From: Tubulanus polymorphus
Taxonomy: Eukaryota; Animalia; Nemertea
Assembly (NCBI RefSeq): GCF_964204645.1
Contig: NC_134031.1
Coordinates: 14,867,807 to 14,931,806, forward strand
Reading direction: 5' to 3'
DNA length: 64,000 nt
Shown: in pieces, positions 1,669-59,291 of the stretch
Layout: each line of letters opens with the position of its first letter
Numbering within the stretch: position 1 is the stretch's first letter
Notes under the pieces: model-generated
Seen by the model: the letters and a program-made list of their open reading frames with translations, nothing else
Database searches by the model: none
What the model was told of the DNA's origin: nothing
Position numbers and translations under genes: made by a program

Positions 1669-9722
<8,054 letters not shown>

Positions 9723-18967: not shown

Positions 18968-19872
18968 ATGGACAATATCGTCGCTAAGCAACGTCAACAA
19001 TGGGAAGTCAATTCATCGACGTCGTCAAATTTGTTCTATTTCTTCAAAATGAAACGTCACCGGTCGACGTGTTCCGAACAAGCCAGTTCTCCGCTAGTCG
19101 CAGAACAGACTACCGCGGAAGCGTGCGGCCCGCCTTCGCCAGACGGTACAAACTCCTCGCCGGAACGAAGATCGCCCGTTAACAGTCAAATGAGCGACAA
19201 TTCGATAGATAACGATAGTTTTCCGTCAAATGTTAGTTCTACAGGTTCCTCGTCGTCTGGTTACGAGAGCGCCGGCTCTTCAGTCATGGACGCTTTGTTC
19301 CCTGCGCCAAACTCAACATCGCCGGCGACCGCGAGAGGCAGTTTATCGAAACAGATCGACAACAAATCTCCTGTCAATCACGCCGAGCAGGAGGCGGGGC
19401 TACGCGAGAAAAAACGTTTTCAAGAATTCACCGAAACGGTGCGTAAAGATATCACGTCGATTCAGATGCCTGTTTTTTCGCCCATGCAGAAATCTATGGA
19501 CGATATCTTCCGCCAGCCGTTACCCCTCGAAATCCCCCATATGCCGTCCTTACCACCTCAACAGAACACTCTCGTTACAAATTACGGATTCCGGAACGAT
19601 ATGAAATTCAGCCCGGGTCCGCGTCATTCCGATTCGATCTTCAGCCAGAAACGAATCGATCAGTTTAGACCGGTCTCGCTGCCCGAAACTTTCCGCTCGA
19701 ATCCATCGTCTCAGATAATGTTACCAGTACAGTACAATATGAGAAATCCGATTGAGACAGCAACAGATTCGAATCAGTTGGAATCAACTGATAAAGATCC
19801 CGATGATTTAGAATGCGGAATATGCGCGGACCGGGCTACCGGACTTCATTACGGGATCGTCACTTGCGAAGG
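18968..19872 (+). CDS. Hr4: HR4-like coding exon 1 (Ser-rich A/B region plus first zinc finger)
   Basis: ORF 18968..19876; donor GG|gtaagc. Confidence 0.9.
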
Positions 19873-21636
19873 GTAAGCTTCAAAAACGCCCTGATACCTC
19901 AATGGGGACAAATCTGAATAGGCCCATTTGAAAAAAAGTTGAATTTTCGATGGAGCCTCCATCGACTTAAACGTATTTCCGACTAGTAAAGCCCCAATCA
20001 GTCGCTTGCCGGTTCAGACTGATTTGAATATTATTTGAATGAACATGAATTTCCCAATAATGCACTTCGATTTAAGGAAAAAAAAAAGATAAATCCGACC
20101 GCCGAATCACACAACTACCTGTCATTCAATTTCCGATTTCAAAATTTGACCACCTGTTTCGCTTCCGGCAGTTGCGGTGGGTTTTGTAAGGGACACCAAA
20201 TCAAAAATAAAATCAAACGAAATCTACCAATCAAATAAAAAACAGGGTCAATTCCTATTTTATGACCAATCCGGAATGCGTACGATTGAGACCACCTGCA
20301 TTACTGTGTAAAATCAAAACCAAAAGTAACATAAGGGAATGATGTAAACTATTCTCGGTTTGTTGTGTAGGGTTGATTATAATTTCATTTCTAGCGATCC
20401 TTTCATTCTGGATTCCAGAACCGACATCTGTAGGGAATTTATTTCAACTCGAGCGAAACCTTTACACAATCACATTTATTCATTTATTCATTTATGTATT
20501 TACAGATGTAAAGGGTTTTTCAAACGAACCGTTCAGAATAGACGCATTTACAACTGTTTGTCAGGAGGCTGTTGTCAGATCGATAAGTTCCAGCGCAATC
20601 GCTGTCAATATTGCCGTTTCAAAAAGTGCCTTAAAATGGGAATGGTGATTGCAGGTAAAAAAAAACCTCGATTCGATTTCAAAACCAATCCCCTGTTCAG
20701 TCCCGTTCCGGTGGGTGTGACTGGTGGGTTTCTAATCCAATCAATCAATCGATCAATCGATCAATAATTCATTAATTTAATCAAAGAAACAGTTGGTAGA
20801 ATTCTCCCATTTAAAGAAAAAAATCTCGCTTCATTCGGTCAGCATAAACCGGCATTTCTGGGGCTCGATTCTACTAATATTCCGCCTCTCCGTTTCAGCG
20901 GTACGCGAGGATCGTATGCCTGGTGGACGCAACTCAGGAGCTGTTTACAACGTACAAAAGGTAAATAAACCACAATTGATAATGACGTTACGATATCCTG
21001 TATTGGACCCTTTTGACGTCATGAAGTCTATATGGGCCAGATTACGTCGTAGATTCCACCTGATGTAGGGCCAAAGTCCAGATTTACATCGTGGCGTCAC
21101 TGTACAATACAACATCCCTAAGTCTTGAGGGCTTTGAGACATCCACCGTCTCTCGATGCCTATGACTTTACGAAAATCTTAATGACGTCACCACACATTT
21201 TGCGTTTCTATTTTAGGTTAAATATCGGAAACATAAAAAGAAGATGGCGAATAAAATACCGAAAATGGAGAGATATTTGAGAGAAACAATTCCTGTCATA
21301 TCGTTAGAATCACAGGTAGTTCATAACGGTCATTCTCGTCACGTGTTCACACCGTCCCGCCACCTACATCAACATATCTACTCAGGCAATAAGGGAAACA
21401 ACGCGGTAGCGGATATTCTCAATCCCTACAACCCGGCGCCGGCTTGGGCTACTTCCGGTCAGCACCGCGCTGCAGGTGTCCGTCAATTGTCACCATCGCA
21501 ACAACAAAATCAACTCGTCAATTACTGTTTCAGTCCGCGGCCGACTTTTCGGGCGCCCTCTTCTGGTCAATATCAGTACGAATCGATCGGACGCTGTGGA
21601 ATACAGGAAGAACCAATGGACTTACACGTCTATTAG
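18968..21636 (+). CDS. Hr4: HR4/GCNF (NR6A)-type nuclear receptor, DNA-binding domain only (no ligand-binding domain seen), 4 coding exons, 511 aa
   Basis: Exons 18968-19872, 20506-20654, 20899-20960, 21217-21636. C4 zinc fingers [35 protein letters not shown]...[14 protein letters not shown] and C-terminal extension [29 protein letters not shown] are characteristic of NR6A/HR4. An in-frame TAA lies upstream of the ATG, and an acceptor at about 18938 implies a non-coding 5' exon. Confidence 0.88.
20506..20654 (+). CDS. Hr4: HR4-like exon 2 (end of P-box, second zinc finger)
   Basis: tttacag acceptor, G|gtaaaa donor. Confidence 0.95.
20899..20960 (+). CDS. Hr4: HR4-like exon 3 ([21 protein letters not shown])
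   Basis: tttcag acceptor, AAG|gtaaat donor. Confidence 0.95.
21217..21636 (+). CDS. Hr4: HR4-like terminal exon (VKYRKHKK...[10 protein letters not shown])
   Basis: ttttag acceptor; frame is open to TAG at 21634-21636. Confidence 0.82.
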   Translation, partial: VKYRKHKKKMANKIPKMERYLRETIPVISLESQVVHNGHSRHVFTPSRHLHQHIYSGNKGNNAVADILNPYNPAPAWATSGQHRAAGVRQLSPSQQQNQLVNYCFSPRPTFRAPSSGQYQYESIGRCGIQEEPMDLHVY

Positions 21637-21639
21637 TCT

Positions 21640-21752
21640 CCTGGACCCAGTTCCACAGTTGTCAATTAAGATTTGACCCCGAGTTAAAACATTGAAAATG
21701 AACTAATCTTAACTCAGAGTTAACTCTAACCCACAACTGTGGAACCGGATAC
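21640..21752. mobile_element. ~110-bp MITE (CCAGTTCCACAGTT...AACTGTGGAAC) immediately after the HR4-like stop; copy at 33105-33205
   Basis: TIRs and shared core TTAAGATTT..CTGAGTTAA.ACAT.GAAAATGAACTAAT. Confidence 0.75.
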
Positions 21753-23267
21753 AGTAAGCTGAGTGTTCTGGTCAAAAATTACTTTTTTGTTGTTTTATTG
21801 TTTTCTTTTTGTTGAAATCCTGTTATCGTCGTCATGGCGACGTATAGGTAACGGGTGGATTTGTTGTATTGTTTGAATATATTTTGATTCATGATTTTCC
21901 ACGTTGTCTATTTTCGGGGAACAAACCTGCGAAACTTGGAATAGATCTCGCCTAGTATAAAAAAATCAAGTAATGTTTCAATGGAGAAGGTGCTAAAAAG
22001 AAAGTATTTGGGGGCCCGGGGCGGTAGGCGCGGGTGGGGGCTTCGTGAGAACAATTACCTAGATCATGTAGCCGATAGGCCTCAGACGTTATTTTATGAT
22101 TCATCTTCGCAAAACGCGGTATCGAATCCCTTTGTGTCTAATCGTTGGCTCGTGACTGTTTTCTGAATTCAGTTCTTATCTCTTGAAAACCTTTGTGTCG
22201 CCAGTTAAGTGTTGACACCCGCCTGGTGTATTTTAAGAACGATGTTGTACGGTGTTCATTAGTAAATGGCGCAGAATTCATCGCTAATATTCAAAAATGA
22301 ATGTATACCGGCTGTACACTTTATATGATTTAAACTTGATCTTTGTTTATGATTAGTCTGTGTACAAAAAGTGTCGTACTTTATCAAGAACAAAGGGATT
22401 TACGAAAGTGATATTGAATCGAGGGAGTGATCTGAGAGATTGGCAGCAATGGGGAGTGGAGAGGGGGGAGCGTGCGACTAGTTAACTAGTGAAAATCGAT
22501 ATGCAGACTGAAAGTCTTCGGAAAATTATTTTTTTGGTTATTTCCGTTAAAATCATAGTTTTGGCCGATGTTTGACTGAACAGCCAAAGTCAGAGAAAGT
22601 CATCTCAGTTTAAACAGCGCATAGTAAGAGTTACTGCTGCTCATCACGTGTGCCTAATGTATCGCTAATCACGTTCCCTGTACACGTGCAGTCAGTAATA
22701 TATACATTTATACAGATGATATTATATAAATACATCGTTAACCGGATGTCATGCGTGTCTTTTTCTTTACGTCCGGACTAACACGGCTCTTAGAAATCCT
22801 TTTGATTACTAGTGACTCGGGAGTCACGTGACAGGATTTTGTTTTGTTATTGCGCGAGTTGATTATAGTGTCTCGATTGGACTCTAGAGGGAGCGCACGC
22901 GCGCACATGACTGTCACGTTGTCTGTCGTGTGTGTCGATTGATCACGTTTTTCTTACACACGCCGTCGACAATCAAATTCGTTCAAACGCGTGACAACTT
23001 TTGATTATATCGATGACCAGGGAGCGACCTTTAACTAACTCGATCCCGGTCAATACAACTTCCGACCGTACATGTAATTCCAAATACATAATTAACAGTG
23101 ATGACTAGTGAAAACCTTTGCGAGTCGCGTCTTCTTTTAAAGATATATGATTAAAGTCTTCTTTAAGGAGACGAAAATTTGACGTTACATCATTTCGGTT
23201 TTTAACTGGTCGATTCTTCCACCTGGCAGTGAGACTGGACAGTGAACTAGGGGTTTACGGGGTATGG

Positions 23268-23410
23268 GGATTAGGGCTTGAGGGTTAGGGGGTTAAGGGT
23301 TAGGGGTTTAGGATGTATGAGGTTAGTATGTTAAAGGTTTAGGGGATTAGGGCTTGAGGGTTAGGAGGTTAGGGGGTTAAGAGGTAGGGGGTTGGGGTTA
23401 GAGGGGGTCG
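23268..23410 (+). repeat. Degenerate telomere-like (TTAGGG)-rich tract
   Basis: Several TTAGGG/TTAGG variants. Confidence 0.6.
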
Positions 23411-26411: not shown

Positions 26412-27044
26412 CTAATATTGCGAAATTGCCCACATTTCCAAAATATCGTTCAGATCCGGTGACCCGTAGTCAGGATAGAATCCCCCGACACCGGCACTGC
26501 CACCGATAGTGCGCGCGCATCTCGTAACGGCCGTCGTCGTCTGCCTGTTCGGTTCCTGCCAGAAAGACGACGGAAATCTCCGTTCGTTCATTGGTCGATA
26601 TGTGAATCGTTTGGCCGTTTGGAAATCGAATAATTCCCCGAGTGGTCCGAGGCCTTTCTCCGAGTCGACCTGACCCGTGTACGCTAATTCCCTTTTAACC
26701 TCGCTTGCCGCAGCTATATCGTTATCGTCCGTTTTACCGTTGGCTATTTTTAGAATTTCGGCGAAATAAACCTCTCGTCCGGATCTGGCCGGTTGCCAGG
26801 TATCTTCGTATATATCGCACGTGGCCACGCCGGGGTTCGAACCCAACCCGTTATTTCCACCACCGCTGAATATATGGCGTATATTGCGAGTCACGTGATC
26901 GGCGAAATCCAGTAAATCGTGCGCGGCCTCGTTCTCGACGCTTTCGTCGTCGGAAAAAAATTCATTATTTTCAGATCCGAAATCGTCTTCAAAATCGTCA
27001 ACTACAATATCGTGTTCCCCGGGAACTCCGACAAATCGCTCCAT
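26412..27044 (-). CDS. PERCC1: PERCC1 (FAM181-related, TEAD-binding motif protein), single coding exon, 210 aa
   Basis: First ATG at 27044. Motifs occur in the order I recall for vertebrate PERCC1: acidic N-terminus, LLDFADHVTRNIRHIF, CDIYED, SGREVYFAEILKIANG, LGPLGELFDF, PMNERRFPSSFWQEP, SPDLNDILEMW. Confidence 0.9.
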   Translation of the reverse strand: MERFVGVPGEHDIVVDDFEDDFGSENNEFFSDDESVENEAAHDLLDFADHVTRNIRHIFSGGGNNGLGSNPGVATCDIYEDTWQPARSGREVYFAEILKIANGKTDDNDIAAASEVKRELAYTGQVDSEKGLGPLGELFDFQTAKRFTYRPMNERRFPSSFWQEPNRQTTTAVTRCARTIGGSAGVGGFYPDYGSPDLNDILEMWAISQY

Positions 27045-27390
27045 TTCGCCTTTGATCGCATGAGAAAGAAACTTCACCGAATAAGTACCAAAAGGGTTGA
27101 TCGTGTCAGTTACTGCTGCTTTTAGACTGAGATATTGTCTCCACAAATTCCGTGCAAAATTTCCAACAAATTATGCTCGACAATTATAATAGATCTATGG
27201 GAGGTAACCTTTAATGTCCGCCAGGCGACAACATCAACTTCGAAAAGGATTTAAAAAAAACAGAGTTCGTTAAAAGATATGCTGTAAATTAGATACTTTT
27301 CCCCTCGGTGAGAATTGTATCTTTTTAGAAACAACAATCATTGGAGAAGACCCGGCCAGAAGTGTGGCTGTTTTGCCGGAAGTTTGTCTG

Positions 27391-30968: not shown

Positions 30969-33384
30969 ATGAACTACTTCCTAACCCTTGGAGCCGTACT
31001 GCTGTTGATGTCGTCATATGTGACGTCATGCCCGATCGTTAAAGGTAGTAAGTTTCATTGTTAATATTATCAGTTATATGCAGTTTGTACGAATCGAATT
31101 TTGAACAACTAGCTAACTACAATCTCACGGGTCCCGCATATAAAATATCCATAGACACCCAAAGCGTTGTATTGTTAACCTGACGATATCATAACGATGG
31201 TCAAAAATAATCTTATATTTACATGAGAGATGATGCCCGAAATTTGGCAAACAAACTATGACGTCACGCGGTCAACTTCATTGTTGCAGCCAGGTGGATT
31301 TTTGTCACGTGACAGCTCATTTGTGCAGACAAACGCTCGAATCCATACGTTTCACAGTTGTATTATTATTTCTGTATCAATTTGTTTCTAAATTATTTGA
31401 CTTTCTTCTGGTTTTGTTGTTGCGCTTTTCCGTGAAATAGATATTGAAATTGATGAAATATGCTAATTCGATGGTATGAGTAATTTATATAACAGATTGC
31501 GATAGTTTCAGCATCCCAATCCTTGCATCTCAACCTGATTTCTATGATCAATATTTTTCGCGGTAAAATACATTCTTGGCAACTTACCAGCTTCCGGGCA
31601 AACTTCGTCCTTTTAGCTAACCTAGCATTTTGATTAGTCACAAGGTCATCCGCCAGTTGGCTTCAACTCTTACCAACTGACTCGTCATTTGGTTTTACTT
31701 TCGTAGTTACGATAATATTCGTTACACATTTTATAATTTAGACGACGACACGATTACAAGTACTGTAACTACTACACCAACTGCTACTGGAACTACCGAG
31801 ACTACATCAGTAACTGATACTGAAACTACCGAGACTACATCAACAGCTGATACTGAAACTACCGAGAGTACATCAGCAGCTGATACTGAAACTACCGAGA
31901 CTACATCAGCAGCTGATACTGAAACTACCGAGACTACGTCAGCAACTGATACTGAAACTACCGAAACTACATCAGCAACTGATACTGAAACTACCGCGAC
32001 TACATCAGCAACTGATACTGAAACTACCGAAACTACATCAGCAACTGATACTGAAACTACCGGGACTACATCAGCAACTGCTACTGAAACTACCGCGACT
32101 ACATCAGGTAAGTTTTTAGTCGAGAGTTATCTCAACTTTATTTCAACTCGATCAAAATTGTATATCTTTTTTTCAATTAAATGTCGTATAAATATGGTGT
32201 CTACAGATCTCAGAGTCAGAAACTGTGCAAATCGTTTCACCAAGGATAAACATCATCCATGATGTGTTTAGGTTTGTTTCCTATGTGGCACTGTGGAACG
32301 AACAATTCAAAGACAGCGTGGGTCAAATCCATAAGATTCACTTAGGTCTCTTTCCTATATACATAAAACGTTTGAAATTCGACATAAGTAGCCAGTATCG
32401 TCGTCGGGTTACGAACACTGGGATCCGACTAGAGTTTTTATCAGCCGGGCAATCGTGTCTCGTTTTTGATCACCCTTATTGCGATCATATTTTACCATGA
32501 ACCTCGCCAAAAAAAACAAACTCAAACGATAGTTTGTGCCTAGGGTAATTTATATTAAACTTGTAGAATATTGATAAGACGGCTTATCGCTGCGTCGACC
32601 TCATTCAGATCTTGATACAAATAATATCACCCATGCATTACTAACGACCATACCTATTTGTATTTTCATTACCAGAAGGAATGGAAGTTCAATTTGATAT
32701 GAATGTATTCACTTTCTTACTGAAATAGCAACACATCAGTTCAAATGATAGAAAAATGCTGTCTGTTCTGCCGTGGTCTTTTTTAGACTGCTTTAAAAAG
32801 TTCATTGTGATCGCTCCAACAATTATTATTGTAATTATGCAAAAAGTGGTGACATAATGATGTTGTCGAAAAATATGCGGCCACATATTCTTTAACAGAA
32901 TAATGCACCGGATTCAATGCCGTTGAAAGTGACGTCACATTTGTTACGACTGTCGTAACAAATCCAGTTATCGCATTCGAATGCTATTGATTAAATATCA
33001 TTAGGAAGTCGTCGCGATTCTGCGCGTTCGTTCATCGATGATTTTTAGCACCGTCTTATTAATAGATGTCGATTTTGATCGTCTCGGGAATTTTCTTAAA
33101 TGCCTGGACCCAGTTCCACAGTTCCCAGTTAAGATTTCACTCTGAGTTAACACATCGAAAATGAACTAATTTTAACTCTAACCCAGATCAGTGGAACTGG
33201 ATCCTTGTTGAATATTGATGTTCCATATTTATTCTCACGGTGATCGTGTAATCTTTAATTTATGTTACTTATAGTCTATTCGGTATCACAGTTTGTTTTT
33301 CAAGTGTTTTTTTTTCTTTCAACAGATAAACCTGTTAAATATACGTACAGGAAAGGCCCATGGTTAGTATCCGTATATCATTGA
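30969..33384 (+). CDS. Small secreted Thr-rich mucin-like protein with 11-aa repeats, 3 exons, 166 aa
   Basis: Exons 30969-31044 (signal peptide MNYFLTLGAVLLLMSSYVTSC), 31742-32107 (33-bp repeats, TDTETTETTSA) and 33326-33384 (DKPVKYTYRKGPWLVSVYH*). Phase-1 GT-AG introns; AATAAA near 33913. Confidence 0.72.
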
Positions 33385-43978: not shown

Positions 43979-44835
43979 GTATCAATCTAACTTACAACTT
44001 GATAGAACTCCATTTAATAATCAATTTTATTTCAGTGTTTAATTCAAGTATGAACATTATCACAGTGAATGTCCCCTCCCCCTAACAGATACCCCTCATC
44101 CCCTCCCCTTCCCTGCACATACCCCCTCCCTCCCACCCACAGATTCTCCCTCCCCACACATATTGACTAGATTAAACCTCTATAGTAATCTTTAATTCAG
44201 GATTTAATTACTCTCGAGATTAGACTTAAACGTCCAGACCCCTCACAGTTGAGGAGTATCGCCTCGTCCACGGAGCCGTATATTATTTTGTGACCTGACA
44301 TTATTCTCATTCTAACAATCATTTTGAACAATCAATTCACAATAGTTTATACAACGCACAATTATTCACTTCAACTCACTAACATACAATCACTGATTCT
44401 TAACATTCAACCACTAATTCAACAAGTATAATTCATTTATTTGGTATTTTCTTGTAAAGCAGCACTGAGTGAAACAGTATAGTCTGATCACCCGCCTGTC
44501 TGTATCCCCGCCCTTCAGCCCGCTCGCCTGTGTCCCCGCCCTCCCTAAGATCTAAATAATGAATAAATTAAACAAATAAATTAAACATGGACAAAGTGTT
44601 TAAATAATTGCCAACAAAATTCAATAGTTTTTCCAAAAAGACTTGTCAGTTGCGTTAAGTTGTAACGTAAGTAACTAAAGCAGATACATTAAATATAAAA
44701 ATCTTTGCACAAAAATATTTGAATTGTCTAAACATTGATAAGACGAAATTGAAGGTGAATTAATTATTGAGAGAACTAAGATAATACATAAACACTAGAA
44801 CTAACTTTAGAAAATTTTACCAATCATAACTAGTC

Positions 44836-45630
44836 ATAATAAGACTGAACCTGACACCCCTCCGTGTGGCGGGTTTCCTAATAAAACTGAACCTGACACC
44901 CCTCCATGTGGCGGGTTTCATAATAAGACTGAACCTGACACCCCTCCATGTGGCGGGTTTCATAATAAGACTGAACCCGACACCCCTCCGTGTGGCGGGT
45001 TTCATAATAAGACTGAACCCGACACCCCTCCGTGTGGCGGGTTTCATAATAAGACTGAACCCGACACCCTTCCGTGTGGCGGGTTTCATAATAAGACTGA
45101 ACCTGACACCCCTCCGTGTGGCGGGTTTTATAATAAGACGGAACCGGACACCCCTCCGTGTGGCGGGTTTCATAATAAGACTGAACCCGACACCCCTCCG
45201 TGTGGCGGGTTTTATAATAAGACTGAACCTGACATCCCTCCGTGTGGCGGGTTTTATAATAAGACGGAACCGGACACCCCTCCGTGTGGCGGGTTTTATA
45301 ATAAGACTGAACCTGACACCCCACCGTGTGGCGGGTTTCATAATAAGACTGAACCTGACACCCCTCCGTGTGGCGGGTTTTATAATAAGACTGAACCTGA
45401 CACCCCCTGTCTCACGGTTTTCGATAAGACTTAGCCTGACACCCCTCCATGTCGCAGTTTTATAATAAGACTGAACCAGACACCCCCTGCCTCACGGTTT
45501 TCGATTAGACTTAGCCTGACACCCCTCCATGTCGCAGGTTTTATAATAAGACTGAACCGGACACCCCCTGTCTCACGGTTTTCGATAAGACTTAGCCTGA
45601 CGCCCCTAAGGGTCGTGGGTTTCATAACAT
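44836..45630. repeat. 42-bp minisatellite abutting the SUCO stop codon (3' UTR side)
   Basis: (ATAATAAGACTGAACCTGACACCCCTCCGTGTGGCGGGTTTC) about 19 copies. Confidence 0.95.
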
Positions 45631-55500: not shown

Positions 55501-58500
55501 GGGTAAGTGGCCACCCTTAACTAGGTCTAAGACTGAGCCTTAATTTCTAGGTGCGTAAGTGGCCCCCTGAACAGTAGTTCTAGAACTTAAACCTGATTAA
55601 GTGGCCACACTGAAATAGGACTAGAACTTAACCCCAATTAAGTGGCCACCGTGAACTAGGTCTAGAACTGATCCCTGATTTCTAGGTGCGCAAGTGGCCA
55701 CCGTGAAATAGAACTGAGTCGGTGAATATTGTAATTTACCTTCTCGTTTACGTTCCTGCTCTTCAGCTATTTGTTGTTTTTTCCACTCATCAAATGAAGG
55801 TATGTCTTCTTTCTCTTGTTTCGGCAAAACGTTATTGTCAGTAGCCGGTGTGGTCGTCATGGTAACCGGTGCATCGACGACCGCTTTTTCTTCCTCCGTT
55901 TGTGGTTTAGCCTGCCCGGAGCCCGCAGCTCCCGTGCCCATGGCTACATTATTCTCAGCCGTAGAATCGGTATCAATATTTTGTCGCTGGTCTGTAGACA
56001 TCACCTGGTCTTCAGTTTTTGGTTTGTTCTCTATTTTTATTTCTCCTGAATTCAGCAGTTCATCTTTACCACTGAAAATATAAAAACAACACCGGCGTTC
56101 AGTGTGGAGTCAATATGGGACTCAGGATCCAATTCAACAGTATTCAGTGTAGTAGAGTCAATATGGGACTCAGGATTCAAATCCATAGTAATCAGTGTAG
56201 AATCAATATGGGACTCAGGAAACAGTTCCATAGCACTAAGTGTGGAATAAGGCTTTTTACAGTTTCCAGGCGCCATTTTTTTTGGGTACCCGCCGGGTCC
56301 GCATTGTTGAATTTTTTGTCCCTATTTTTCCCCCGTTTAATTTTTTTATTTCGTTTATATCTCTGGATTGGATTAAGTTAGAAACAAAGTAAAAATATCG
56401 GTGAACTCGGCTAATAATTGACTATTTTATGATATCACCCATTTATAAAGTTAATGCAACAATGCGTGCTGGTGAAGTTATAAACATTGGTATCATCTTC
56501 CCGATAATTCAACTTGAATTATTGCTCATCCCATTCAAAAGTTCGTAATTCTTACAAATTTCTATCTACATTTTCGAAGTTTTCAGGATCAATAGACATC
56601 TATATATAGTCTTATATACTTTTTACCGTTTTCAATTATCTTTATTAGTTTTTAAGTAATTGCGAGTCAAACTTCCAAAACACGTTTTCCTGGCTTCCCT
56701 GCATGCATAGTTACTGAAAATTTTGATTTTAACAAAATAGGACCGGTTAGATTAAATTTCTTGATATAAATATGCAAACGTGATACTCTAGAAAACTTTG
56801 TTTCTAACTTAATTCAATCCGGAGATATGAACGAAATAAAAAAAATAAACATACGGACAAAAAATTCAACAATGCGGACCCGGCAGGTACCCAAAAAAAT
56901 GGTGCCTGGAAACTGTAAAAAGGCTTATTGATTTGACTCTGGATCCAGCTCCACAGCCTTTAGTGAGGAATTGACTTGTGGCTCTGGATCCAGTTCCACA
57001 CTCTCAGTTTGGAGTCATCCTGAGACTTTGAATTTCAGTCAGTGCTAGGGGCAAATATTTGGAAATGAACTTTAAATCCAAATTCATATCAAAATCAAGA
57101 ACTATGAAACTAGAGCTCTGCCACAAAATCGATTAATTTGCTATGAAATTAGACCCTCTTTCGATAATTCCCGTAAAGGTTTAATGTTCAAGCATTTTTT
57201 TACTACCTTTGGTGCCGATCAGCACTCCCCCGAGGAACCGACCACAACATGCAGGGATATAAACTGGATTGAGCCAGTTGAAACCTCACAGATAGTGTTA
57301 CCAGATCAAACAACAGATTCCCTGATTGAATATGATTCAAATCTCGACCAAATCAATAATAAACTCTTTATCAGTCAGTTCTATGAACAAGGCAGCAAAT
57401 CACCTTTCTCTCTCTTAACAGATATAAGTTGTTAAAAACAACTTGAACCAGGGCACAGAAATATAGATATTTACCTATTGCATATCAAAGTCAGGGCAAA
57501 AAACTAAGTTCAACAGTTGTGAACCCAGTTCAACAATAAACCTGGTTCAACAGTTGTGAACCCAGTTTTACAGTTACAAACCCATTTCAACAGTTGTGAA
57601 CCCAGTTTTAGTTATGATTGCAGTTCAAGTTAAGAACCATGTTGAACAGTGTGTTGTGAACCCAGTTTTACAGTTATGAACCCATTTCAACAGTTGTGAA
57701 GTCATTTTTAGTTTGGAACCAAGTTCAACAGTTGTGAACCCAGTTTTACAGTTATGAATGCAGTTCAAGTTGTAAACTATGTTGAACAGTTGCGAACCCA
57801 GTTCGACGATGAACCCATTTTAACAGTTGTGAGCTCTCAGTTTTACGGTTGTGAACCCAGTCCAACAGTTCCCAGTTGATAAATATTTTACTCTGTAAAG
57901 TTAACTAATCGGAAATGATGTAATATTCAATTTTACCTTTTTGATTCTTTGTCTTTTTCATCCTTCTTTGTTTCGATGACAATAGGAGGCAGTATAATCG
58001 GTTTGTCGGGTATTTTCTGAGCGTCCGGTATTTCTGGAGATATCGACTCTGAACCCGGCTGCAGTCTGAACAAACAAAGAACAACAATTTGATAAAAAAT
58101 CAAAATGGTTTGTCCATTAATCAACGCATAAATGATACAAATTCCAAAAATTTCCCAAATAGCTACGAATTTTGATTCAGAAATTCAGATTTCACATTCT
58201 CAGAGAGTTGGAGTCTTAAATCTTTATAAATAGAAACTGCCAGTTATTATGAGAAAAAAATGGATCATCGGTTCATCAGTGATACAAGAGGAAAAAACTG
58301 AAATACAATGTATGTCATCAGTGGAAAAACTAGAACAGTTACACAAAAAACACATTTATCCTCATTCTCACCAGACACAAACAAAAAACACGGTACGCAC
58401 ACACACACACAACCCTACATCATATACAGGGAGAATCCTACATCATACACAGGACCCTTAGATCACACAGGGAGAATCCCACATCACAGGGAGAACCCAC

Positions 58501-59291
58501 ATCATACAAGAACCCTACATCATACAGGGAGAACCCTACATCATACAAGGAGAACCCTACATCATACAAGGAGAATCCTACATCATACAGGGAGAACCCT
58601 ACATCATACAGGGAGAACCCTACATCATACAGGGAGAACCCTACATCATACAGGGAGAACCCTACATCATACAAGGAGAACCCTACATCATACAAGGAGA
58701 ACCCTACATCATACAGGGAGAACCCTACATCATACAAGGAGAATCCTACATCATACAAGGAGAATTCTATATCATACAGGGAGAGTCCCACATCGCAGGG
58801 AGAACCCCATGTCACATAGGGAGAACCCTACATCATACACAGGGAGAACCCTACATCATACAAGGAGCACACAGGGAGAATCCCATATCACAGGTTGAAC
58901 CCTACATCATACAGGAAGAACTGTACATCATACAGGGAGAACCATAAATCTAATCATACAGGGAGAACAAACAACCCATTAATACAGGGAAGTTCAGAGA
59001 ACCCTTAACCCAGTAACAAGGGGCCCCAGAGAATCCTATCAGTTCCGCAAGGAGCCCTAGGTACATAAAAGTACAAGTGACCTGTGAATCTTACCTCTTT
59101 GATAAACAAGCGTTAATCAATAATAAAATCAGCGATATATGAACGCCCGTCAACATGCCGTAACGCCACCTAGTCGTAGATCGTGTAGTTACATTGCGTT
59201 GTTTCTGACGACGGATGCAGAGAAGGGCGGTTGTTTTTAAAATCTGTTCCGTTTCCGTTCCGTATTGAGACGATATGAACTGATTCAACAT
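45631..59291 (-). CDS. SUCO: SUN domain-containing ossification factor (SUCO/Opt/Slp1 family), 12 coding exons, about 1340-1390 aa
   Basis: Exons 59291 (or 59156)-59095, 58065-57937, 56071-55740, 54976-54790, 54303-54196, 53844-53736, 53128-52798, 52188-50856, 49333-49117, 48328-48109, 47329-47268, 46566-45631; all phases are consistent. Motifs: [22 protein letters not shown]...[22 protein letters not shown]...[57 protein letters not shown], a transmembrane segment, LYIVEP. Confidence 0.96.
46730..46905. repeat. GGGCAGCAGGGC-based minisatellite, SUCO intron 11
   Basis: 21-24-bp units. Confidence 0.9.
47268..47329 (-). CDS. SUCO: SUCO exon 11
   Basis: [10 protein letters not shown] motif; phase 1-0. 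Confidence 0.85.
47550..48070. repeat. ~30-bp minisatellite, SUCO intron 10
   Basis: GATCCTGACTGGCGCTC.AC.GGTCGAGG. Confidence 0.92.
48109..48328 (-). CDS. SUCO: SUCO exon 10 (transmembrane helix)
   Basis: [22 protein letters not shown]. Confidence 0.92.
48458..49000. repeat. ~50-bp minisatellite, SUCO intron 9
   Basis: ACTAGAGTTCGGTGTAGGGGTAACAGCCTGGTGTGGAACCGGATCAGTCC, about 11 copies. Confidence 0.95.
49117..49333 (-). CDS. SUCO: SUCO exon 9 (coiled coil)
   Basis: [16 protein letters not shown]. Confidence 0.95.
50856..52188 (-). CDS. SUCO: SUCO exon 8 (large low-complexity exon plus start of coiled coil)
   Basis: ORF 50843..52243; [16 protein letters not shown]. Confidence 0.93.
52798..53128 (-). 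CDS. SUCO: SUCO exon 7 (end of SUN domain)
   Basis: [17 protein letters not shown]. Confidence 0.95.
53348..53642. repeat. Inverted pair of tRNA-box-B-containing fragments (SINE-like)
   Basis: CAGGGATTCAAACCTGATG versus CATCAGGTTTGAATCCCTG. Confidence 0.55.
53736..53844 (-). CDS. SUCO: SUCO exon 6 (SUN)
   Basis: [23 protein letters not shown]. Confidence 0.95.
54196..54303 (-). CDS. SUCO: SUCO exon 5 (SUN)
   Basis: [36 protein letters not shown]. Confidence 0.95.
54333..54678. repeat. 46-bp minisatellite, SUCO intron 4
   Basis: ACACTACAGCTGTGAGGGGAGA..TGGTTCACCAAGAACCCATGCA, about 7 copies. Confidence 0.93.
54790..54976 (-). CDS. SUCO: SUCO exon 4 (start of SUN domain)
   Basis: [11 protein letters not shown]...DEYMINPC. 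Confidence 0.95.
55388..55715. repeat. ~45-bp degenerate minisatellite, SUCO intron 3
   Basis: TAAGTGGCCACCCTGAACTAGGTCTAGAACTGA. Confidence 0.85.
55740..56071 (-). CDS. SUCO: SUCO exon 3 ([11 protein letters not shown])
   Basis: Conserved motif and splice sites. Confidence 0.9.
56246..56929. mobile_element. TIR element with ~140-bp inverted arms, SUCO intron 2
   Basis: AATAAGGCTTTTTACAGTTTCCAGGCGCCATTTTTTT... versus ...AAAAAAATGGTGCCTGGAAACTGTAAAAAGGCTTATT. Confidence 0.85.
57505..57880. repeat. Degenerate (CAGTTGTGAACCCAGTT) minisatellite
   Basis: Related to the 2860-3480 array. Confidence 0.85.
57937..58065 (-). CDS. SUCO: SUCO exon 2
   Basis: Phase 2-2, ttcag acceptor, gtaaaa donor. 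Confidence 0.75.
58410..58990. repeat. 21-bp minisatellite (ACCCTACATCATACAGGGAGA), SUCO intron 1
   Basis: More than 20 copies. Confidence 0.95.
59095..59291 (-). CDS. SUCO: SUCO first coding exon (signal peptide; start ATG at 59291 or 59156)
   Basis: [19 protein letters not shown]; donor AG|gtaaga. Confidence 0.7.

Follow-up and report, generated by a model that had tools for sequence, protein, structure and literature searches.

We analysed a stretch of 64,000 nucleotides from the nemertean Tubulanus polymorphus (contig NC_134031.1, here C7, positions 14,867,807 to 14,931,806 of the forward strand). This whole stretch is referred to below as the window, and positions are those of the window unless a contig is named. 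On its plus strand, at 18968-21636, we identified a nuclear receptor gene of the NR6A (HR4/GCNF) type for which no ligand-binding domain (LBD) could be found. We consider it probable that this gene is the sole NR6A orthologue of the genome and that it has lost its LBD, its product of about 511 residues consisting of an A/B region, a fully conserved DNA-binding domain (DBD) with its C-terminal extension, and a short disordered tail.

The gene is composed of four exons:

18968-19872, plus strand: exon 1, with the start codon, a Ser-rich A/B region of 282 residues, the HR4 N-terminal motif and zinc finger 1; donor GTAAGC.

20506-20654, plus strand: exon 2, with the P-box CKGFFKR and zinc finger 2, running to MGMVIA; acceptor tttacag, donor GTAAAA.

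20899-20960, plus strand: exon 3, with the C-terminal extension of the DBD; acceptor gtttcag, donor GTAAAT.

21217-21636, plus strand: exon 4, with VKYRKHKKK followed by a His/Gln/Pro-rich tail of about 130 residues; acceptor attttag, stop codon TAG at 21634-21636.

As read from the DNA and from the list of open reading frames (ORFs), all three introns are of the GT-AG type with polypyrimidine acceptors and have compatible phases (2, 1 and 0), and the codons that they split encode Gly (GG/A) and Ala (G/CG), the same residues as in other HR4 proteins. The predicted protein has 511 residues, from 1533 coding nucleotides, and ends in PMDLHVY. DNA contigs from two independent runs, X1 and X2, also contain these exons and this stop codon, with no frameshift. 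A first-pass annotation of the window had described four phase-consistent exons encoding a Ser-rich N-terminus, a DBD and a tail, and all of these are present in the sequence at 18968-21636. An acceptor-like ttttcag at about 18935 suggests that there may be a further, upstream exon in the 5' untranslated region (UTR).

We assigned the gene to a receptor family by searches and alignments which, like the fold prediction reported below, were run exon by exon and not on one joined chain. The Pfam zf-C4 domain is recognised at the end of exon 1 (residues 282-301, 22.5 bits) and in exon 2 (62.1 bits, E 6.9e-17), and exons 3 and 4 match no Pfam family. A HMMER scan with exon 2 against 1.84 billion representative proteins gave 4937 matches, and among the best 150 of these, which were examined, one family dominates, with the same finger 1, the P-box EGCKG and a near-identical C-terminal extension. 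Identity over exon 2 is 71-78% to mollusc, insect and annelid proteins named in their sources as "hormone receptor 4-like" or "NR6A1-like". Relatives carrying HR4, HR4-like or NR6A1-like source names were found in Haliotis, Mya, Babylonia, Phlebotomus, Pollicipes, Paramacrobiotus and Strongyloides, and orthologues without a source name in Owenia, Lingula, Lottia and others. A few NR5A proteins stand beside the dominant NR6A family, and no Knirps-like protein occurs among the best 150 of the 4937 matches.

Conservation within the DBD and its extension is close to complete. Compared with an alignment of 28 full-length family members (A1), the predicted protein is identical at all 38 scored invariant positions and at 18 of the 19 scored nearly invariant ones, the single change being Tyr to Gln in the extension. 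Two DBD positions that fall on split codons were left unscored, and are conserved when read by eye. All eight zinc-binding Cys of the DBD are kept. The N-terminal motif of HR4 proteins (consensus SLFxDxKLKRRK) lies at residues 21-32, and aligns both to P0084, P0036, P0056 and P0104 and to the consensus of A1. A profile built from 28 HR4 sequences matches exon 2 at 107.2 bits, against 80 bits for the NR5A paralogue, and the extension in exon 3 at 43.5 bits. Database predictions for other HR4 genes read into intron sequence after CEG, GMVLA and NLYK, and we therefore infer that the three intron positions (after CEG, GMV[LI]A and YK of the extension) are common to the HR4 genes of other phyla. 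Among solved structures, exon 2 alone matches the NR5A2 DBD best (E 8e-17), followed by GCNF (E 3e-13); the NR5A identity that this best PDB match had raised was dropped in favour of NR6A on the evidence of finger 1, the P-box, the extension and the named matches. The first-pass assignment to an HR4/NR6A-type DBD with its extension thus agrees with the names of the top matches, and, judged by its DBD, extension and N-terminal motif, the gene is of the NR6A (HR4/GCNF) type.

We surveyed the remaining nuclear receptors of the genome. A zf-C4 scan of the 268-Mb assembly identified about 33 receptor loci, of which this is the only NR6A-type gene: with the HR4 profile, an HR4-type DBD and extension were found at no other locus. 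The closest paralogue over exon 2 is an NR5A (FTZ-F1-type) gene (L043, C7:16.566 Mb; 66% identity), which has the P-box ESCKG and LBD exons of its own. The first-pass annotation had suggested that the LBD-less receptor competes with a full-length HR4 protein; this does not apply, because paralogue searches with an HR4 protein and the HR4 profile revealed no further NR6A gene of full length.

The survey yielded several observations on other receptor loci. Two NR5-type receptors with ESCKG P-boxes, each with LBD exons, lie about 20 kb apart at C7:16561260-16586022 (minus strand), 1.7 Mb from the NR6A gene, and are probably an NR5A/NR5B pair. A locus at C1:5009074-5018635 (plus strand) has several successive zf-C4 matches followed by one weak LBD match, and looks like a nuclear receptor with two DBDs (2DBD-NR). 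Two further zf-C4 loci, at C11:2615105-2615329 and C3:26532839-26533713 (both minus strand), have no PF00104 match nearby and are possibly LBD-less or very divergent receptors; in the one on C11 the P-box reads EACKG, which is unusual, and finger 2 carries a long insert.

The second line of evidence concerns the LBD itself. Full-length HR4 relatives match the Pfam LBD family PF00104 at 39-74 bits over a domain of about 190 residues that ends in KM[FI]Y[VI]PFLLN. Of the 54 PF00104 matches that the assembly contains, none falls within the window (C7:14867807-14931806). As a positive control, 30 of the 32 other zf-C4 loci have a PF00104 match within about 12 kb, the exceptions being the C11:2615105 and C3:26532839 loci described above. 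When the Haliotis NR6A1-like protein and the 28-sequence HR4 profile were searched against the assembly, both matched the NR6A gene solely through its DBD and extension, and their LBD portions gave only weak matches (at most 27 bits), all at the LBD exons of other receptors. We also applied a custom hidden Markov model built from 37 HR4 LBDs, unfiltered, to every stop-to-stop piece of the window on both strands. Its highest score in the window was 6.4 bits, compared with 13-31 bits at most of the positive-control receptor LBD loci. Neither the window nor the rest of the 268-Mb assembly yielded an HR4-type LBD ending in KM[FI]Y[VI]PFLLN. The absence of an LBD downstream of the stop codon, noted in the first-pass annotation for a 4.8-kb intergenic stretch, therefore extends to the whole window and assembly.

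The DNA downstream of the gene gives the same picture. The 64-kb window does not contain a single N, the genes next downstream of the stop codon lie on the minus strand, and none of the coding-like plus-strand ORFs downstream is LBD-like. The only sizeable one among the latter is an open frame of 193 residues at 31681-32259 (plus strand), mucin-like in its Thr/Glu-rich repeats (TETTSxADTETTE) and without a significant Pfam family.

We additionally considered whether the gene had undergone fission, with the HR4 LBD kept as a separate gene, and rejected this. The sole LBD-only gene on the chromosome (L029, C7:17737878-17739125, plus strand, an ORF of 415 residues about 2.85 Mb downstream) is NR0B/DAX1-like: its best structural match is the NR0B1/DAX1 LBD (E 1.8e-5), the HR4 profile matches it with 16% probability, and it has no zf-C4 match nearby. 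Its N-terminal region contains a canonical CtBP-type motif, PMDLS (DEPMDLSCKP).

What takes the place of the LBD is the tail encoded by exon 4. This exon is single copy in the genome and encodes 139 residues, of which only the first 9-18 can be aligned to HR4 proteins. An AlphaFold prediction of exon 4, of little weight because it used the single sequence, gave a mean pLDDT (predicted local distance difference test) of 45, with short helices at residues 5-24 only; as modelled, the tail is too short and too disordered to be an LBD. In its distal part, beyond 21316, the codon log-odds are +0.087, compared with -0.26 +/- 0.10 in intergenic windows, 0.24% of which reach +0.087, and GC makes up 52% of the sequence, while the introns and the downstream DNA have about 40%. 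We found no relatives of the tail beyond the VKYRKHKKK region, one of the searches covering only proteins of 76-243 residues. A search for relatives of the N-terminus (exon 1) was also blank; the collections appear to hold no near relatives, so these blanks say little.

Variation at the locus points to constraint on the exons. Comparison with essentially one alternative haplotype identified one single-nucleotide polymorphism (SNP) in 1536 nt of exon, against 14 SNPs in 1683 nt of unique flanking non-coding DNA (Fisher p = 0.0011), and neither a frameshift nor a stop codon in the second haplotype. The exon SNP is 21592 C>T, changing Arg to Cys; one further, synonymous SNP in exon 1 was seen in another run. 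The low density of SNPs in the exons and the intact second haplotype therefore argue for purifying selection, and against a pseudogene.

GCNF, HR4 and NR5A receptors bind extended AGGTCA half-sites or DR0 elements (direct repeats with no spacer), and it is by analogy with them that the DNA specificity of the NR6A protein, its competition with NR5A and its repressive activity are proposed here. The EGCKG P-box and the extension would direct it to AGGTCA half-sites with a 5' extension (TCAAGGTCA, DR0), as in GCNF and HR4. These predicted target sites are the same as those of the NR5A/FTZ-F1 receptor encoded 1.7 Mb away, with which it may compete. Without an LBD, the protein would have neither ligand sensing nor LBD-dependent recruitment of corepressors, and its output would therefore be constitutive, either through occupancy of and competition for sites, or through motifs in the N-terminus or tail. 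Regulatory activity may thus be placed in the 282-residue N-terminus or in the tail, in which one candidate motif can be named:

21613-21627, plus strand: PMDLH, a candidate CtBP-like motif, two residues from the C-terminus, which departs from PxDL[S/T].

Knirps represses transcription through a CtBP motif of the sequence PMDLS, and a more specific form of the reading preferred here is that the NR6A protein, lacking an LBD, serves as a dedicated short-range repressor, recruiting CtBP through its C-terminal PMDL(H) in convergence with Knirps. We regard this as unlikely. The PMDL stands two residues from the end of a tail without other recognisable features, and by a rough estimate from composition a 4-mer of this kind would seldom fall among the final few residues by chance. 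P[LVIM]DL is present in only one of 97 HR4-family proteins, there in the N-terminus, and its absence from the other 96 would make the motif lineage-specific and not inherited noise. GCNF and HR4 are, in addition, known mainly as repressors (PMC12606860). Against this, the motif was noticed after the fact, and the tail searches yielded no relatives in which to follow it. The four core residues fit a CtBP motif, but the fifth residue is His and not Ser or Thr. The ELM pattern for CtBP allows Val, Ala, Ser, Thr, Arg or Gly at this position, and His lies outside it. No paper presenting PxDLH as a CtBP motif was found in a literature search. The full scenario, in which an ancient, single-copy NR6A receptor turned into a DBD-only factor and gained a CtBP-recruiting PMDL at its C-terminus, arriving at the Knirps solution by convergence while the genome retained no HR4 of full length, is in our judgement a long shot.

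A different explanation is that the 3' end of the gene is mis-modelled, the mRNA leaving exon 4 at an internal donor (for example CAG/GTAGTT at 21316) or running on into further exons, with an LBD that is unassembled or too diverged to be recognised. In the HR4 genes of other animals the hinge is long and the LBD exons lie far off, and for this reason many of their database predictions stop after the DBD. The three sequencing runs in which the locus was recovered consist of DNA-like contigs, and one possible RNA run has nothing there. Neither AATAAA nor ATTAAA, the canonical polyadenylation signals, occurs within 1.4 kb of the stop codon. Both of these points weigh against the reading preferred here, as do several others. 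Beyond the window, the absence of the LBD rests on whole-genome searches that begin with a filtering step; the search for an orthologue in a close relative was blank, in collections that seem to contain nothing near this genome; and the SNP comparison depends on the one haplotype mentioned above. There is also an orphan, sub-threshold PF00104 match at C4:25680109-25680258 (plus strand; 22.5 bits), with two internal stop codons and no DBD nearby; the HR4 protein and HR4 profile searches give no match at this position.

On the other side, four independent searches revealed no HR4-type LBD in the window or in the 268-Mb assembly, while LBDs were detected at 30 of 32 other receptor loci. The gap-free window, the minus-strand orientation of the next downstream genes and the lack of LBD-like coding potential in the plus-strand ORFs also speak against a mis-modelled end. 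The 106 codons beyond the candidate donor at 21316 are free of stops, which has a probability of about 0.002 at the stop frequency of this genome, and they score as coding. We therefore consider a mis-modelled 3' end improbable, and think it likely that no LBD is present in the mature protein.

It is very improbable that the gene is a functionless, decaying remnant of a truncated HR4 gene, as the missing LBD, the unproven expression and the miniature inverted-repeat transposable elements (MITEs) within intron 1 and immediately behind the stop codon might suggest, given an ORF intact over four exons with canonical splice sites, the retention of every invariant DBD position that was scored, the eight zinc-binding Cys among them, an exon SNP density 13-fold below that of the flanking DNA, and the status of this gene as the only NR6A copy here of a receptor kept across the sampled molluscs, annelid, brachiopod, arthropods, tardigrade and nematodes.

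The repeat that follows the gene was examined as a possible cause of its truncation:

21641-21754, no strand assigned: a high-copy MITE with terminal inverted repeats of 22 nt, starting 5 nt after the stop codon, in the presumed 3' UTR.

Word depth in this element is about 117,000, compared with about 37 for single-copy DNA, and places the repeat boundaries at 21638-21644 and 21745-21750. Truncation of the gene by the MITE was rejected, since all inferred boundaries of the repeat are downstream of the TAG. If the insertion duplicated a TA target, the sequence before insertion would still have read TAT TAA.

We also noted other features of the window. A repeat in intron 1 (19979-20372) has a word depth of 4,000-7,000. 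At 23240-23400 there are degenerate TTAGGG-like units (GGGTTAG/GGGGTTA), which look like an interstitial telomere-like repeat. A convergent ORF of 244 residues lies at 26412-27146 (minus strand); its only Pfam match is a sub-threshold one to TEADIR3 (TEAD-interacting omega loop) at residues 185-199, and the label PERCC1 given to it in the first-pass annotation is tentative. Tandem repeat arrays at 44817-45465 and 58308-58898 produce, in several frames of either strand, long ORFs that are spurious.

Finally, we compared the LBD-less NR6A gene with known receptors. Reports of NR6A (GCNF/HR4) receptors range from cnidarians to vertebrates (PMC7827873), and those family members that our searches recovered complete carry an LBD; a literature search found no report of an HR4/GCNF protein without one. 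The gene shares with this family finger 1 (C.IC.D[KR]ATGLHYGI[IV]TCEG), the EGCKG P-box, finger 2, an extension ending in [KR]KHKK and a SLFxDxKLKRRK-like motif, and it is present in a single copy in this genome. It differs in that its relatives (in Mya arenaria, Babylonia areolata, Haliotis and Phlebotomus) carry a PF00104 LBD of about 190 residues, of which there is none here, in that its hinge and tail, beyond KHKKK, show no relation to those of any relative, and in the replacement of the extension Tyr by Gln.

The receptors of the NR5A group (FTZ-F1/SF-1/LRH-1) resemble it in their related extension (RxDRMxGGRN) and in the recognition of extended half-sites. In contrast, they have the P-box ESCKG and a different finger 1 (CPVCGDKVSGYHYG), and the NR5A gene of this genome has its own LBD exons.

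If the reading of a genuine LBD loss is correct, the combination of that loss with a perfectly conserved DBD would be a natural example of a receptor turned into a ligand-independent DNA-binding factor. It would raise the question of which NR6A functions need the DBD alone. To those who study the evolution of receptors it is a curiosity, and not a new kind of system. It would also provide an NR6A-derived addition to the few DBD-only receptors known, the Knirps group and ODR-7. With Knirps, Knrl, Eagle and ODR-7 (NR0A) the predicted protein has in common a DBD without an LBD, by architecture and not by descent, and its PMDLH can be set beside the PMDLS of Knirps. Its DBD, however, is of the NR6A type and the fifth residue of the motif differs, so that any likeness to the Knirps group would be convergent.

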